DNA from: Trichosphaerium sp. ATCC 40318
Lineage: Eukaryota; Protista; Tubulinea
Length of the DNA stretch: 64,000 bases
Direction: 5' to 3'
Assembly (NCBI GenBank): GCA_038496445.1
Contig: JALMLS010000641.1
Coordinates: 39,781 to 103,780, forward strand
Shown: positions 11,952 to 50,822 of the stretch, one piece after another
Layout of the letters: the number at the start of each line of letters is the position of its first letter
Position numbering within the stretch: the stretch's first letter is position 1
Made by a program: the position numbers and the translations under genes
Notes under the pieces: generated by a model
Database searches by the model: none
The model's input: only the letters and a program-made list of their open reading frames with translations
Told to the model about the DNA's origin: nothing

Positions 11952-14684
11952 ATGGCACAGGGACGACGACCTTCTATTAGGTTCTACGATGCGTCACAGT
12001 ACAAATTACAGTCGTTACCACACGACGTTTGCGTTTTTGCTTCTTCAAGGTGCGTAATTGATACTGACTGTGGTAATACAGAAAAAGTAGCAGTTGAGTT
12101 AGCCCTAAACTTTTTTGACGATTTATTTTTTTTGTACAGCCAGAATCGTTCTCTGACGGCCAGCATGGGATATATTGATACAGTACCTTACGTAGAGCCC
12201 GGCGAGGTTATCTTTCGGCAAACAAGATTGTATGTCTAACAAATAGCTTTAAAATAGTCAAAGTAATCAACTGCAGAGGTTTTGTTGGATTTATTTGTGT
12301 TGGAAGTCCAAGTAATCTTGCAAGGGCTGTTTGGAAAGCTCTTTGTGGTGCACAAGACCATAGGAAGCAATCAGTACTTTTCGATGTACCCTCACAAGGT
12401 AACAACCTTTAGAAAAAAGACAACGAAAATGTTTAATGCAATCAAACATTTTTGTTTTGATCACGTGATTACTGATTTTATCTTTTTTAATAAGAAATGA
12501 CACAAATACATGCACAAAAGGTTGCAGATGTCTTGAATAACACTATCACGCAGTTTGCAAAGCGTAATTTAATGATAAAAACGATTACTCTGCGCATCAA
12601 TTCACCAAGAGAATTCAAAATTTTCCAAAATACATTGGGTATTCAACGAAGGGAGTACCGGCAAGATATGAATTCTGAATATCACCTTCGAGCTCGCAGT
12701 GTGCAACTTAATCCAGGATATCCACAAGAAACACCTGATCGAAATGGCCGTATAGCTGTGTCCCGTCAGCTAGGCGAATACGACTACGGACAGCATTTCA
12801 GAGGAGACGGGAGTTACTCTCAGATGTCTCCTCGTAAGAAGCAACTAAATCATTACGAGTCTGATCAAGACCCTTATGCACGTGTACCTATTCCTTCAGG
12901 AACTCCCAGAGATTATACGGACCGTGAAAGAAGTATCGAAAGAAACTACGCATCCCAAACACAACCAGAAGAACCTTCTATTCTTGCTTACACAGAAAAT
13001 GAATACGATGAAACTAATCGTGAATCCTATGATCCTTGCGCGGATCAGACGTACCCCAATTTCGATGTAAACGCTGAAGCAGAAGAGGTAGCCAAAAACC
13101 TAATCTCTGTTTTTACTGGCAAAGGGAAAAAGAAGTTGACAAAGATTAAACGGTAATAATTGTTTTTTGTAAACGTTTTTTCACATTATTTTTAGAGAAC
13201 ATCCTGATGTAAAACAAATGGCATTATTTAGACGTCTAGCATCTACGTTTGGCCAGGTGCGATTCTTCTTTTTTTCAGCATCAAGTTTCTTCATGTCACC
13301 TAGTAAACATTTTTATTAACTAACACGTTTTTTTTTACTGAAAACAGCCAAATCACCCTACATCAACAAGGAATACAAGAGCTTTTATGAATGATGTATC
13401 AGATGAAGTCTACGAGAGAATAGTACGATATTATCTCTTATGTGTTTCATACACCTACTATTACGTATTTAATGAATCTGTCTAGATTGCAGCACATATT
13501 AAAGAATGTGAAGCAGACTTAAAGGAAAAGATAAAAGAAAGTAAATTTAAAAAAACCAAAGCAACTGTTAAATACGCTGCACGTGATTTGTACTTTGAAG
13601 CGAACTTTTGTGAAGAAGTGATATATGCAACTATAGTAAACGAGTGTTCAAGACGCAGTTTGCATAGTAGCTCTTATGCAAAGCAGATGAAAATGGAATA
13701 TTGCACTAAATACAAGGTACCAAAATTACAAACAGAACTTGATGAATTGAACGAAAAATACAAACTGCTGGATTCTACATGTGAAAGATTGAGATCGGAA
13801 AAAGAGAACCTGGTAAAAGAGGCTCGAGAGAAAACAGCCAAAAAGAATGCTGCAATTAAACAGTGCAAAAGAGTTGAACAACAACTGGACAAAGCTATGC
13901 TTGACATCGAAAAGTTGGAAGACGACCTTGAGGTTAGTGAAGAGAGAGAACATAACCATGCAAACCAAATTGCACTATTAAGGAGCCAACAAACAGCAAC
14001 ATTCAAAGATTTGGAGTATTACAAAAGTGAGTCAGTAACCTTAAAAAGACATAGCGATGCCTTGACAGTACGCACTTTATTTTTTATCTTTATTGAAACC
14101 GGAACTCTAGAGCGAACTCCACACCACCAAAATAGCTTTGAAAGACTTAAAAGTAGAATTTGGTATTGCGATTGATGAATTAGATGACCTTAAGAGAGAA
14201 AGGGATAAACTCAATGTATGTATCTCAAAATTATTGAGAAAAGAAAAAAAAACTTCGACCTTAAATTTCTGTTTTAGAAGGACTTGCGGGATAGTACAGA
14301 AAAAGCACGAAGACTACAAAGGGAAAACAAAGAGTTGAATAATACGCTTGTACGTTGTAGTAAGTAACCTTGTCCTTAATAGTCGTATATAACAGAGGAG
14401 AACAAGCGCTACGAGCAGTGAAAATCTACAGCTTGAATATAAAAAATTGGTTGCTATGCTTAATGGCAAAGACGCACTAATACAGGAGATGTCATCAATA
14501 ATTGGAGACAAAGATCTACACATTGAGCGCTTACAGAATCAAGATAAGGCACGTGATTTTCATTGAAAGGATCACTCACGTTTTAACTCGTTTTTCAAAG
14601 GTATCATCAAAAACTATAAAAGATTTGAGAACAGAGGTTTTAGGACTTCAACATCAAGTTGACAGCAGTCACCGGACTGTCTAG
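11952..14684 (+). CDS. Protein with a degenerate macro-like N-terminal domain, low-complexity linker and C-terminal coiled coil
   Basis: The spliced frame is continuous through ORFs 11952, 12497, 13588 and 14138 to TAG 14684. The segment at 13700-14650 is heptad- and E/K/L-rich. Confidence 0.7.
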
Positions 14685-39814: not shown

Positions 39815-42800
39815 CTACATCATTGTACATTTCCCTTCTTGCTTTGACTTTTCTCTTCCGTAAAACGTAGAACGAGAGCGCTTACGACCTAATGACGAAG
39901 TTTGTGTTAATTTCAGTGAAAATCGGTTTTTCTTAAAGGGTTATAACCGTTTCTAGTACCTTGAGGTGCAACATGTGAAGCCACGCAATGACCGGTATCT
40001 TCATCAAATTGTATTTTGGTGCATAATTTACCAATAAATCTTGTTTTGAATAATTCACGGATTTCTCCAATAAAAGAAGGTATTTGATTCCTGTTCGTTA
40101 GTTTGCTCACAACTGATCCAACAGTTCTCCTTTCTACAAAAAACCTCAGCAATCAAATCACAGCTATATCGCCTCTTAAGCTGTCATATTAAAGATACAT
40201 GTGGAGCACTCATGAAGCTGAATGAACACAAAACAGAAAAAAAACCAAAGCTATTTTGAACTTATTTTCACGTACCGAAATTGATGTTTTTTATAGATGG
40301 TTCTGATGCCCTATGGTTTTTAATGTTATAAATCATCGTATGAATATGATTACTATTCATTCGAACAACGTACTTGAAAATAATACTTTGTTGAAGTGCA
40401 TCCCAAGTTACAACAAAATCAAGTGCGATATAAATTGATCCTCTCTGAATCAGATATGCTCTTGAGAACCTCGAGTTTACTTGTATTATCGGCTTATATT
40501 CGACATAAACTTTAGGGCTATAAAAACATCAGTTGACATTCACTAGAAACGGAAGGTGATACTGTCTTTGAAGATAGTACTTACCTCACAATTCTGATTT
40601 CATTATTTCTTAGCGAGAATGTTAATGGTGATATTATTTTTACTCTTGTTAATGGTGCACTCTCAGATGTTGCTTCAGTAACGTCAAACATTGAGTCAGT
40701 CAAGAAGAATACTTTGGGTATCCATTCTCTAACAAAATGCCTAAAAAGAAAGTGAGACAGGAGCGAACAAGGCGTGTGTTTGTTTTTTTTTGTAGTACAT
40801 TAAGTTGCTTTTGAAGTCACTGAAATTGAAGTCACCACCGACTTCTTGAAGGTCACGCACATGATCTTCAAAATTTGTACTTCCAGTATCACAAATACAA
40901 GGTGAGAAAGTATTTTGTAGCAATCCTGTCAAGTTCCGTGTGACCTAGATGCAGAAATGTTAATTTTTTTGAAAATCATGTTTTTTTGTACGTCGTGCTC
41001 TAACAGTGAGAAGTTACATAAGAATTTGTCTTTCCAATCTCTTTTCATATCGATAATCCATTTATCTACTGCACGTGGTAGAATATGATAACGACCAAAA
41101 GTTGATCTAGCATAATCTACAATACCTAAAAGAAAAAAAGGTTAGAAGGAAAGCAACATACAAATAGCATGTTCTTTACCAACAAGTCTATTATCAGGTT
41201 CAAGAAACTCTTTCAGTATAGGTATTTGTCTGAAATCTTTAGAAGGCTTGATACCAGTTACACGTAATACTTGTGGAACACGAATGAGTGCTAACAAGTA
41301 TCTACAAGTAGAAGTCAGTTTTCTTGAAACGAAACATTGGTTGAGGTTTTTTGTTCGATTTCTTAACGCTGGCGTACTGTTCCAGGTGCGCAAGGCGTTG
41401 CTCAATATAATAGGGATCCAGATTACCAAATATTATCTTGCCAGGGAATGGAGGCACTTTGACATCCCAAGGCAAGAACAACAATAACTAATACAAACAG
41501 TTTATATAAATGATATTTAATCAACTCTTTTTTTGTGAAATCACGTGCCTTTTGATGCAAGCAATCGAATTCACTAAACCTACGTAGTACGTAGTGTTTA
41601 CTGACGTCTTTTGTAACAAGACTTTGTACAACAGTCTCAATCATGTAAGCAACGTGTATATCGTTGTCTCTTGATTTAATAACGTATCCAGGAATAGAAA
41701 TCATCAAGCCTTCACCTTTTTTGATTATTCACACTTTTTCCACTCAAAAAAAAAAACCAAAAAAATATCGTTTTCTTGGCATTCACGTGATTGAGTTACT
41801 GTGGTTTTTTATCTAATTTTGTTCACGTGTATTTGAAGGTAAAAAAATCGAGAAAAGTCGTACTGCGTGATGGTATGATATTGGTTGTTTGTTTGTTTTC
41901 CATATAATTTGGATCCCTATCAGACAAAAGTCATTTTCTCGTTTAGAAACGCTCCTCTTGGATTACAAAATCGTACCCTCTTACACCAAAGTTGCCAACA
42001 CTGAACCCTTTATTTTCGATTGGTTGTATGATAGGCGTTGTGGGCTAGAAACAAATAAAAAAGTTAGTTGGTTTTTTTTTCTGAACAAAAATATACTTAC
42101 ACGTGGAGGTATCCCTGAAATACTTTTACGTCTTGAAGCACGTCCACCAAAACTATGTGATTGATCTATACGCTCTTTATAAATTACTTCTTTATGCTCT
42201 TCAACATGTCTCCAATCAACACCGACTGATTGAGAGGGTTCAATATAACTGTGTAAGAACGTTAAAAAGATGTTACTATTGTTATATCCTTTGTCTTGCC
42301 TATTGTTTCGAGCTCCTTCACGTCTGCTAATTATTGGACTTTCTACTAAAGGGGCATTCATTGTCTTTGATTCTAACGTTTGAGGTCTCAAATCGCGAGA
42401 TGGTGATGTAGTTCTTGTCATTACTACTTCTACTTCTCTAAGGTCATTCATCATGGTATCCTAAAGTGGTAAGCTTATAATAACATCAACACCTTGCATA
42501 CGGCATTAAGTTCCTCAGGGATAACCAACACTATTTCTGCACCATCTTCGCTACCTTGTGCTGCAGAAAGCGTAGGTGTACCTGAACGGCAGTTAAAAGA
42601 GATGAAGCTAGATTGGGTTTTTTCATTCATATCATTCGCTGAAACTTACCCCTTCGTGTCAGTGAATGACTGCCTACTAGAAAGTCGAAAAGATCAGATA
42701 CTGTAACGTATCCACCTCGTCCAATATTTGAATTTCCTTGTAAAACATATGAAACCAATCTAGCAAAAGTGGACACACCAGAACCTTCTGTCTAAATGTT

Positions 42801-43955
42801 TTTGTTAATCCAAAAATAAATTCTTCAAAGGTAGTTTTCACTTGCACTAACCTCGCCAGGGCTTCCTGCAGTGAGTACTAAACGTGCAGATTTATCAATT
42901 CTTGTCTTTGTCCATTTCTCGTCCCGTATTAGAGTGTTTCTTCTTGCACCACTGAGAAGTTTTGTCTTTGGGTCCATGGTAAACGCTAGACAGGACGAAG
43001 TTTAATTGATACATATAGATAACATGGTGCACTTAGAGAACGCAAAGTACATCATTTGAGTAAACCATTTGCAAAAAAAGAAGAAACAATTTCAGCCTTT
43101 TAAGGCTAGAAGAAATACCTGTAAGTTGACAGTTCATCAAAAATAGCACGTGCATTGCTTTCAAATACTTAGAAATTGTTAGCAAGGCGCTTTGATATAT
43201 TAAACAAACCTCATTGGACCACTTTATCAACTCAGTAACAGATATTAAGGAACTCTTGTCGAGTGGTGATCCATCATAAGGTACTAAAAAACTTTCTCCT
43301 AAATGCAAGTTTTAGTTCGAATACATTCACTAAATAGTAGGTTCATACCCACGCCTTTATCATTCTCCATAGTGTATCCATGTCCAGAGAAATATATCTA
43401 ACAATTCTGGTATTAAAACACGTGATAAATGATGTGCAAACTTTTAACTAACCGTAAGCATGTCCTCGTTTTGGATCTGATCTGGAATGCGTTTCATAGC
43501 GCTCATAATAGCTTCCTTTGTAGCATTTTCCTCTTGAGACATTACTTTAAGCGTGATACAACGAAAATTGTTCATACCTTTCAAAACAATCAGGTGCGAT
43601 TCATCTTTAATACCAGTGCTCTCTAAGCACTCTTTAATCTCTGTAACATCACCCAACGCCTTTTACTTGGTTGTAAGCCAAAAAATAAAAAAGTTACTGT
43701 GTATTTTCTATTTCAATCAATTCACGTGATAGGGGTTTTTATCACGTGTTTTTTACCTTGTCGTTTGGTGGAAACTCTAAATAACCGCGTATACCAATTA
43801 CTATTGCGAATCTCTTTCTATAGACATCAGAGGCACTATGTGTATGTTCTGGATGCTCCTAAGTTGTTATTTAAGGATTTGTTTGACAAAAAAAGGGTTT
43901 AACATGCTATGTTACGTAGGTTTGTTTAATTTTTTTATGTACATACATAGGCCAT
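39815..43955 (-). CDS. Caspase-fold (C14) pseudo-peptidase + PX domain + C-terminal CaaX protein
   Basis: YRKRFAIVIGIRGY..ALGDVTEI..NATKEAIM..IYFSGHG..FLVPYD..HVLFLMNCQLTG..RLVLTAG. PX: HVAYMI..VLRRFSEFDCLH..PPFPGK..IEQRLAHLEQYL. Ends GKCTMM*. A single-gene model needs inferred splices at about 41720-41990. Confidence 0.75.
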
Positions 43956-44289
43956 CTTTTTTGTCAGATAGTGTCACCGCCACAATACTCCGCCTTGTTA
44001 CACTTGTAGTTTTTGTTCGTAAAAATATTGACAGTGTCAAATGTGTTAAGCAATGTTCTTTACGATGAATTGAAGACTCCTTTGAAGTACTATTACATAC
44101 GAGCTAGTTATACGATAGTTTATACCTCTATAATGTAGTACAACTGACGTGAGAGTAGCGCTGAGCAATCTTTGTGAAGGAAAGATGACACATCGGAATA
44201 TGACACGTACTTTTCGCTTTGGTTAAATAAAATATCCCAAAGACATGGAAACGAACAAGGCGTTGATTGTTGTACATGCGTTGTTATTT

Positions 44290-45484
44290 TTAAATATCAT
44301 CGTCGTAATCGTAGCGATCAACTGGAGGTACCATTTGGTAACCGTCTTTTTGGACACGTGTCCAGAAGAATAAGCCAAGAGCAGTAGCAATACCAATACC
44401 CAAAAGAGATAGGATAATTAAAAGAGCAATGCCAGTACCTGGTATACCTAGATAGTTACGTTAGAGAGTTTGATTACCAAACAAAGCTTGAGTTAATTAC
44501 CATGGTGGTGTTTCTTTGAGGAAGGATTTGATGGTGAGTCTGTAGCGGATGGTTCTTTTGTGGGTGAAAATGGAGCAACTGGCGGAGGTGCTTCTGTTGG
44601 TGCTTGTGGAGGTTTTGAAGGAGGCTTTGTTGGTTCTCTTGTAGGTGCTACTGGTATTAGAGTCGTTGGTGCTAACGTGGTAGGTGGTGGCGACGTTGGT
44701 GTTGTAGTTGGTGTTAACGTTGTAGGAGATAGTGTTGTTGGCGCCAGAGTAGTTGGTGGCGCTGTTGTTGGTACCAGAGTAGTTGGTAGTGTTGTGGGAG
44801 CTACAGTTGTTGGTGCTAAAGTGGTCGGTGGTGGCGACGTTGGTGTTGTTGTAGTTGGTGCTAACGTTGTAGGAGATAGTGTTGTTGGCGCCAGAGTAGT
44901 TGGTGGTGCTGTGGGGGCTACAGTTGTTGGTGGTAATGATGTCGGTGCTGTTGTGGTTGGTGACAGAGTTGTAGGTACGCGAGTTGGGGGTGGAGTTGGC
45001 GATGATGTTGTTGGTGACGTTGTTGTAGGGGTGTGGGTGGTAGGTGTTGCAGTTGGTGCTACAGGCGCAAGGGTTGGTGGTGATGTTGTAGGAGCATGTG
45101 TGGTTGGCATAAGTGTTGTCGGCACTGGTGTTGGCTGCATTGTGGGCATGAGTGTAGATGGTGCCATCGTGCTGGGTGGAAGCGTTGTACTGAGGGTAGC
45201 AGCGCTATCTAAGCTATGTCCTAGTGTTCTAACAGGCTTAAAGTGGCTTTGGACACTCTGAGAAACATAGCTGGTGGATTTATCTGAACTACGCGTGGTG
45301 GCGTATTTAGAAGCTAACTTCATCAGATTTACCGTTATTGATACCAGAAACTTGGGAAAGTACCTTCAGTCGCCTTTAATGAATTGAAGGACTCCTCTGT
45401 AGCAATTTGTAAACAATTAGAATGATGCAGAACGCATAGAATGTAGAATAGTGTGAATAGCGCTATTTGAGCATAATGAGGCAT
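44290..45484 (-). CDS. Mucin-like Thr/Pro-rich type I membrane glycoprotein
   Basis: Signal-like MPHYAQIALFTLFYILCVL; PTTLAPTT repeats (ORF 44493-45323); TM segment GIALLIILSLLGIGIATALGLFFW; tail DGYQMVPPVDRYDYDDDI*. Confidence 0.85.
44640..45190 (-). repeat. Degenerate coding tandem repeats (PTTxxPTT) with a near-identical ~80-bp internal duplication
   Basis: The segment at ~44683-44760 is repeated at ~44827-44907 with a few substitutions and one 3-nt indel. Confidence 0.85.
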
Positions 45485-49592: not shown

Positions 49593-50822
49593 CTGTCGTT
49601 ATAGATAATGGCTCTGATATGATAAAAGCCGGTTTCTCAGGAGAAGAACCAAAAGCAATCTTTCCAGCCTTTGTAGGTCGCGAGTATGGTAAACATGGAG
49701 GGCGCCCATATGTCGGTGTCGAAGCGGTATCTAAACATGGTAGAACCACAGTAACAAGACCAACAAATCGTGGCGTTATAGCCAACATGGACGATATGCA
49801 AAGCGTATGGCAGCATACTTTTTATAGCGAACTCCGTGTTGAGCCAGAAGATCACCCTGTTCTCCTTACAGTAGCTCCACTTAGTCCAAAAGCAAATAGG
49901 TCAAAATTCCATTCCAACTTTTTGTTTAAACTGACATTGTATTTGTTCAGAGAAAAAATGACAGAAATTATGTTTGAGACGTTTAAAATACCTGGTGTGT
50001 ACGTAACAATACCACAAGTACTATCTTTATTCGCTTCTGGGCGAACAACAGGTATGTAAACAACAGTACAAACACTTCTGTAAGACTAATTTAAAAAAAA
50101 AAAGTGAATACTTGTTGAATCTTTGTTTAGGCATTGTTCTTGATTCTGGTTTTGACCTCACTCATGCTGTACCAATATATGAAGGCCATGCTATTAATCA
50201 TGCTATATCGCGTATAAGCCTAGGTGGTTATGATCTAGGTAAATACTTTAGGAAGTTACTCAATGAAAATGGTAAATCTTTCCCTTTCGACATGAATTGG
50301 CATGGACTTGAGCATACTATAGCTCGTCACTTAAGAGAAAAACTCTGTTATGTTGCTCTGGACTCTGAGAAGGAGACTATAAAAGAAATCTCATCAGATT
50401 CTCTTAACAATGACTATGGTTGTGGTAATGATTTTACATCTCCTATTGGTGCCGAACTTTTTAAGTGCCCAGAAGCTCTATTCAAACCTTCTTTGATTGA
50501 ATTAAAATCACAAGGGATACACGAACTGATAAACAACTCAATTAAGACATGTGACTCTGATCTACATAAGGAGATGTATGGTAATATTATACTATCAGGT
50601 GCAAACACAATGTTTGATGGTATTGATAAGCGTTTGGACAAGGACTTATCTCCTATTGCTTCTACTGATATGAAGGTAAATATTATTGCTCCTAGTGATA
50701 GAAAGCAATCTGCATGGATTGGAGGCTCTATTATTGCTTCCTTACCTAGTTTTTGTGATAAGTTAATGACAAAAGAAGAATATGACGAGTATGGCTCATC
50801 TGTTCTTGTTAAGTGCTTATAA
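49593..50822 (+). CDS. Divergent actin / actin-related protein (5' exons upstream of 49593 unresolved)
   Basis: [74 protein letters not shown] and [10 protein letters not shown]. Confidence 0.92.

Follow-up and report, generated by a model that had tools for sequence, protein, structure and literature searches.

A candidate gene of Trichosphaerium joining a divergent p20-type caspase-like domain to a PX domain and a polybasic CaaX tail

Within the caspase family (Peptidase_C14), additional C-terminal domains have been found only in prokaryotic orthocaspases, and the eukaryotic p20-only forms characterized so far consist of the p20 part alone (PMC5756287). In the pseudo-orthocaspases, both residues of the catalytic dyad are replaced, Tyr and Ser standing for His and Cys (PMC6426788), and CrMCA-II of Chlamydomonas is a type II metacaspase attached to the plasma membrane, with a protective role that is independent of proteolysis (PMC10896300). 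Here, we describe a locus in a 64,000-nucleotide (nt) stretch of the genome of Trichosphaerium sp. ATCC 40318 (contig JALMLS010000641.1, positions 39,781 to 103,780; referred to as the window, in whose coordinates positions are given). We assign a probability of about 0.4 to the reading that this locus, on the minus strand from 43955 to 39815, is one gene encoding a C14 domain and, after about 160 residues of polar linker, a PX domain, followed by an orphan region (about 308 residues) and a polybasic tail ending in CTMM, with the catalytic His/Cys pair kept. Full-text literature searches that combined PX with metacaspase, caspase-like and orthocaspase in turn gave no paper on a C14-PX fusion, in agreement with an earlier interpretation of the nucleotide letters (the sequence-only reading), which had regarded the architecture as undescribed.

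The N-terminal part resembles the bacterial orthocaspases and the eukaryotic "metacaspase-like" proteases, which are p20-only C14 members (MEROPS clan CD; Pfam PF00656), in having AxVIGI.xY, ND, AT, YFSGHG and LVPxD motifs and a hydrophobic strand before the Cys, as well as G.FT-like and VTV.DL motifs after it. It differs from them in that D-x-C-x-S-G is reduced to M-N-C-Q-L-T, and from the eukaryotic p20-only forms (PMC5756287) in that, in the gene model, its C14 domain is followed by PX, the orphan region and the CaaX box. A p10 part, which in metacaspases holds the Ca-binding 280-loop, was not detected after the p20-type match, where a disordered linker follows, although no dedicated p10 profile was run. 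Unlike metacaspases of types I to III, the gene lacks DCCHSG, which three other loci of the same genome (L004 to L006) carry. With the pseudo-orthocaspases (PMC6426788) it shares a predicted p20 fold and a noncanonical, possibly noncatalytic active site, but its His motif is exact and a Cys lies on or beside the nucleophile position. Like CrMCA-II, it would be a C14 member at a membrane, if the location predicted here is right; the algal enzyme is a canonical type II metacaspase, active and specific for Arg, whereas this protein bears PX and polybasic CaaX address modules. The PX domain is similar to those that bind phosphatidylinositol 3-phosphate (PI3P), such as KIF16B (PDB 2v14 and 6ee0) and the sorting nexins, in its Pfam PX match and in RR[FY], PxxPxK and the helix-2 Arg. 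In contrast to those proteins, no BAR, PXA, RGS, FERM or kinesin partner was detected, the partners in the gene model being the caspase fold and the CaaX tail; Pfam scans of the C-terminal exons contained none of the sorting-nexin partner domains (BAR, PXA/RGS/Nexin_C, FERM, SH3 and MIT). Finally, the tail is like the polybasic-farnesyl anchor of the K-Ras4B type: its CaaX box ends in Met and follows immediately on a stretch rich in Lys and Arg. Unlike K-Ras4B, this protein is no small GTPase, and its putative box, CTMM, has Thr as a1 and Met as a2.

The gene model was assembled by hand from GT-AG signals in a three-frame reading of the minus strand, and its continuity and length were checked by script. 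It has 22 exons and 871 codons plus the stop codon, and all introns are GT-AG except for one GC-AG. When the exons were joined by a local script, they formed a single open frame of 871 codons that ended with TAG at 39817-39815. Its start codon (ATG at 43955) and its end at 39815 are exactly the boundaries drawn by the sequence-only reading, and the motifs it quoted were all found on the minus strand where it had placed them: KRFAIVIGIRGY at 43858-43757, YFSGHG, FLVPYDG, HVLFLMNCQLT, ARLVLTAG, RRFSEF, PPFPGK and GRKRSRS..GKCTMM. A short first exon (E1, 43947-43955; ATG GCC TAT, followed by the donor GTATGT) is required because E2 has no in-frame ATG. Most introns of the model are 41 to 97 nt long, and three are 133 to 154 nt. 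Their donors are mostly GTA or GTT and their acceptors mostly TAG, often with a CTAAC/TTAAC-like word 8 to 15 nt before the acceptor, in a 64-kb window with a GC content of 36%, that is, AT-rich eukaryotic DNA. Homology searches of the gene were done exon by exon, and joined exons were used for frame, length, composition and one 22-residue motif score.

The N-terminal domain was examined with a hidden Markov model (HMM) of bacterial C14 sequences. For this model, 79 bacterial loci were gathered via the word FFYFSGHG, and 74 domains were cut out and used; five members checked against Pfam were PF00656, with E values from 5e-16 to 5e-36. The p20-type domain (42502-43858) is encoded by E2 (43858-43757), E3a (43659-43578), E3b (43532-43453), E4 (43397-43349), E5a (43298-43210), E5b (43167-43119), E6 (42985-42852), E7 (42791-42650) and E8 (42581-42502). 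The exon matches were collinear with the profile, falling on nodes 17-38, 44-64, 69-90, 95-105, 108-133 and 199-224. As the exons thus tile the bacterial profile in order, in a chain of 33.5 bits that none of 1000 within-exon shuffles reached (mean, 0.13; maximum, 4.6), the N-terminal domain is, judging from its sequence, a genuine C14 domain of the p20 type, like that of the bacterial orthocaspases, consistent with the prokaryotic-type domain proposed earlier. With the same HMM, E2 (15.7 bits; E = 0.0016) and E4 (10.1 bits) were the top two of the 3305 stop-free segments of the window and E3 ranked eighth, and the three are adjacent on the same strand. A six-frame search of the 70-Mb genome with PF00656 found five other loci, three of which (L004 to L006) are classical DCCHSG metacaspases; this gene was not among the matches. 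With the Cys exon as the query, phmmer against the PDB gave nothing beyond chance level, and the ESM Atlas gave only fragments of Usp (universal stress protein). A further divergent caspase-like domain was seen at another of the five PF00656 loci (L003:836-1843, in G000:C84); it reads YALVIGNGEY .. FFYFSGHA, matches PF00656 with an E value of 3.8e-10 and lies behind a long Ser/Pro-rich N terminus. Word searches seeded with this L003 frame and with the frame of E9 retrieved no relatives.

Two in-frame, stop-free GT..AG segments within the domain may be tiny introns or retained loops, and their retention would still give a full-length protein. Both sit where the protein carries 14 to 15 extra residues relative to the bacterial consensus, and both have good donors and weak acceptors. 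The first is 45 nt long (43577-43533; donor, 9.6 bits; acceptor, 1.1 bits), and without it the protein follows the bacterial consensus with no gap (IVLKEENAT versus VLLGEDAT). The second is 42 nt long (43209-43168), with a CTAAC branch-like motif and an acceptor of 0.5 bits.

The PX domain (41180-41709) is encoded by E11 (41709-41549), E12 (41487-41378) and E13 (41301-41180). E11 matched positions 3-24 of the Pfam PX profile (PF00787) with 14.1 bits and E12 matched positions 29-59 with 20.8 bits, in collinear order. A genome-wide six-frame search with the same profile recovered the locus at 24.1 bits, above the cutoff of 21.6. The residues that contact PI3P are kept, namely, VLRRFSEF (RR[YF] in strand 3), PPFPGK (the Lys of PxxPxK) and YYIEQRL (the Arg of helix 2). 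The nearest solved structure, a weak match, was the PI3P-binding PX domain of KIF16B, with which the contact residues align. These results bear out the PX domain of the sequence-only reading, and binding to PI3P is predicted from the contact residues. The GC-AG intron of the gene model lies within this domain (41548-41488; 61 nt; donor AAG|GCACGTG) and is the only junction that preserves the spacing of the PX profile. It replaced an 88-nt GT-AG intron of the first model, which deletes profile positions, and an AT-AC (U12) intron was dropped, there being no acceptor for it.

Behind the PX domain, five exons with strong splice signals encode an orphan region of about 308 residues (39960-41125): E14 (41125-40992), E15 (40944-40799), E16 (40740-40585), E17 (40517-40276) and E18 (40133-39960). 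It has no recognizable family, as had been said of it, although its length had been put at about 250 residues. Pfam searches of the C-terminal exons at E values up to 10 gave no family except one chance-level match to Spc25. PDB searches with E17 and E18 yielded nothing or chance-level matches to cullin, an ESM Atlas search with E17 yielded nothing, and neither exon has a paralog in this genome. Four phmmer matches to E17 among 1.84 billion representatives were rejected as noise. One of them, a 56-residue tandem-repeat protein, owes an inflated E value to its eight copies, and the other three are Asp-box propeller repeats that share a G.IY...D....TW-like word with E17. The corresponding stretch of E17 (40277-40516, minus strand), GSIYIALDFVVTWDA, resembles the Asp-box word G.IY.S.D.G.TW of bacterial BNR-repeat proteins (P0003), a weak and repeat-inflated likeness that is probably due to chance.

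The last exon (39815-39888) encodes the polybasic tail. The tail, GRKRSRS..GKCTMM, has 8 Lys and Arg compared with 2 Asp and Glu in its last 30 residues, and a Cys is fourth from the C terminus; the CTMM codons (39829-39818) are directly followed by TAG, so that the polybasic CaaX end recognized earlier is indeed there. A Met at the X position of a CaaX box directs farnesyltransferase. The genome carries three loci of the prenyltransferase-beta type as well as ICMT genes, and CTMM is a plausible CaaX box, at which the protein would be prenylated. An AATAAA is found at 39791-39786, 23 nt past the stop codon.

The active site was then considered in its two possible registers. The exact YFSGHG is present in E4, which matched HMM nodes 95-105 with 10.8 bits, so the His motif is intact, as had been noted. 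IYFSGHG lines up with nodes 95-100, where the catalytic His (codon 43382-43380) is followed by Gly after a hydrophobic strand. In LFLMNCQLT, either the Cys (codon 43131-43129) or the Gln (codon 43128-43126) may occupy the nucleophile position. The term "pseudo-caspase" had come from an alignment of HVLFLMNCQLTG to ..DACxSG with Gln as the nucleophile. The Cys next to a Gln was found as described; the placement of Gln does not follow from that alignment, since the last G of "QLTG" is an intron read-through (its codon is split by the intron 43118-42986, and the spliced reading is QLTAF) and the two registers are nearly tied, within 1 to 4 bits of each other. In an ungapped comparison over nodes 140-156, Cys on the nucleophile node scored +1.08 bits, versus +0.22 for Gln. 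The gapped global fit gave 0.96 for Cys and 0.61 for Gln with the 42-nt segment kept, and 16.5 and 14.6, respectively, with the segment removed, in which case Cys falls on the catalytic node without an indel. The spacing from His to Cys is 53 residues, compared with 51 in most of the bacterial C14 set. Taken as a near tie, these alignments slightly favor the intact His/Cys pair.

In the gene model, the caspase-like and PX halves are connected by a linker (41864-42460) encoded by E9 (42460-42101), E10 (42044-41977) and E10b (41916-41864). It is polar, with an abundance of Ser, Arg, Asn and Pro, and has no family match; the frame of E9 is open over 159 codons in DNA with a GC content of 36%. The linker had been called S/R-rich; Ser and Arg are present, but the enrichment is only moderate (of 161 residues, 17 are Ser and 16 are Arg). 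The junction on which the fusion depends (41710-41976) consists of an intron at 41976-41917 (60 nt), E10b and an intron at 41863-41710 (154 nt). Every GT or GC donor and every AG acceptor in the gap of about 270 nt was scored. The four best sites are, in order, donor 41976, acceptor 41917, donor 41863 and acceptor 41710; they are phase compatible and enclose an open exon of 53 nt. This path is the only in-frame route into the PX exon in which all four sites reach 3.5 to 4 bits or more. Among 1000 Markov-resampled gaps, 3 to 6% gave any such path (P of about 0.03 to 0.06), and no such path was found at 4 bits in the intergenic control, one real region upstream of the gene. The gap has no AATAAA or ATTAAA, whereas AATAAA trails the final stop codon. 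An 871-codon frame can join all parts, as the earlier proposal of one transcript requires, and the single transcript itself is judged likely from splice-site statistics. A single 271-nt intron (GTGTAA..AAAAAAG) was dropped as the junction, its sites scoring -0.1 and -0.4 bits. A small nucleolar RNA or a special fold in the gap was dropped as well, there being no Rfam match and a fold z-score of -0.59, and so was the word CACGTGA as a promoter mark, because it is enriched throughout the window.

Several observations count against one gene with an intact His/Cys pair. At the active site, none of the positions around the Cys in MNCQLT agrees with D-x-C-x-S-G, the D, S and G all being replaced, and a wider ungapped window leans to the Gln register (+1.6, versus -1.8 for Cys). 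Scans of single short exons with Pfam and NCBIfam gave no C14 match. As for the fusion, no ortholog or paralog with the same fusion was found among the searches run; an ATG at 41704-41702 coincides with the start of the PX fold and is preceded by an in-frame stop codon and a T-run, as would fit a separate gene; and the matrices used to score the gap were built from the other introns of this gene, themselves inferred. In a rival reading, the protein comes from the same fused gene but has Gln at the nucleophile position and Cys one residue early (MNCQLTA versus MDCCHSG), and would be a dead protease that serves as a membrane-tethered binding module or scaffold. The flanks are more conservative in this register (D is replaced by N, S by T and G by A, and the C is one that the DCC variants of the bacterial set also have), and the wider-window score belongs on the same side. 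Pseudo-variants are known in the caspase-like family (PMC6426788), and one metacaspase that is bound to a membrane has a role for which its protease activity is not needed (PMC10896300). We nevertheless consider this reading somewhat less likely than the one with an intact pair: the score over nodes 140-156 is slightly higher for Cys, removal of the 42-nt segment puts the Cys register ahead by 2 to 4 bits with no indel, and the SG anchor of the original alignment relied on a G that is absent from the spliced protein. Moreover, the exact YFSGHG is retained, whereas the known pseudo-orthocaspases replace both dyad residues (PMC6426788). With the Cys as nucleophile, the protease may still be active, but activity is doubtful because MNCQLT deviates from D-x-C-x-S-G at each flanking position. 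If the domain cuts at all, the Arg/Lys specificity of metacaspases and orthocaspases is probably not kept, because, whichever register holds, other residues stand in place of the conserved Asp at two positions ahead of the nucleophile and of the SG behind it; this expectation draws on the known S1 pockets of metacaspases.

The fusion itself would be an artifact of gene modeling if the locus held two genes on the same strand. Gene A would run from 43955 to about 41944 and encode the caspase-like domain and, behind it, a disordered tail whose last residues are ..GVRGYDFVIQEERF, and gene B, from the ATG at 41704 to 39815, would encode the PX domain, the orphan region and the CaaX tail. For gene B, the ATG at the first PX strand has an in-frame TGA (41731-41729) 25 nt upstream and a T-rich run 40 to 70 nt upstream; for gene A, the frame after E10 closes at 41946-41944. 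The resulting gap of 239 nt is comparable to the distance of about 337 nt between the stop codon of the upstream gene and the ATG of this one. The very poor sites of the simplest, single-intron junction and the 3 to 6% of random gaps that also yield a passable path are in line with two genes. On the other hand, the top four splice sites of the gap come in donor-acceptor-donor-acceptor order, are phase compatible and land in the PX frame, and the gap is without a canonical poly(A) signal, a weak point given that the upstream gene has none either. On balance, two genes appear unlikely, and the caspase-like and PX halves probably form one gene. If there were two, they would be an ordinary divergent orthocaspase-like gene beside an unusual PX-CaaX protein, of modest interest. 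It is also conceivable, but very improbable, that some of the modeled sequence does not belong to a functional gene, with the orphan C-terminal exons or the linker mismodeled or decaying and the CaaX end fortuitous. E17 and E18, the two C-terminal exons tested, are without a credible relative in the searches run, and the ESM Atlas recognition value for E17 is low (1063). However, nine successive exons are open across introns with good donor, branch-like and TAG acceptor signals, the signals of the last intron are strong, and AATAAA lies past the stop codon.

Some features of the surroundings were recorded along with the gene. CACGTGA occurs 39 times in the window (for example, at 41783-41790, 43722-43729 and 12461-12468), versus 5.5 expected, often as the palindrome TCACGTGA, and its sites are spread over introns, exons and spacers alike. 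The upstream neighbor (44292-45323, minus strand) encodes a Pro/Thr-rich, mucin-like protein, whose last exon, after an intron, provides a transmembrane helix and then, up to the stop codon, a short acidic tail, ..YDYDDDI. A motif of about 22 nt, CA[A/G]AGGAGTC(C)TTCAATTCAT, is found on the minus strand at 44062-44083 and 45376-45398, upstream of this gene and of the mucin-like neighbor, respectively. It could be a common regulatory element or a local duplication; a general promoter element was rejected because the motif is present only at these two neighboring genes in the window. At 50112-50822 on the plus strand, an open frame of 236 codons has a divergent actin-like or Arp-like sequence.

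As one gene with an intact His/Cys pair, the locus would encode a protein held on PI3P-rich endosomal or phagosomal membranes jointly by its PX domain and its farnesyl-plus-basic tail. The caspase-fold domain, retaining the His of YFSGHG and the Cys of LFLMNC, would then be displayed on the flexible linker. The sequence-only reading had proposed an adaptor or scaffold role and targeting to endosomes or phagosomes, both of which are possible. We suggest, tentatively, that this could be the first caspase-family protein sent to a membrane by dedicated lipid-targeting modules, that is, a phagosome- or endosome-resident caspase homolog in a phagocytic amoeba. If true, it would contradict the published generalization that eukaryotic p20-only C14 proteins lack extra domains. 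The fusion would also add to the evidence for nonproteolytic or respecified caspase folds at membranes (PMC10896300). Caspase homologs outside animals are poorly understood, and the combination with a PX domain and a CaaX box would hint at a site of action, PI3P membranes such as phagosomes, where the protein could act on cargo, ingested prey or membrane-proximal signaling, either as a protease of new specificity or as a pseudo-protease.

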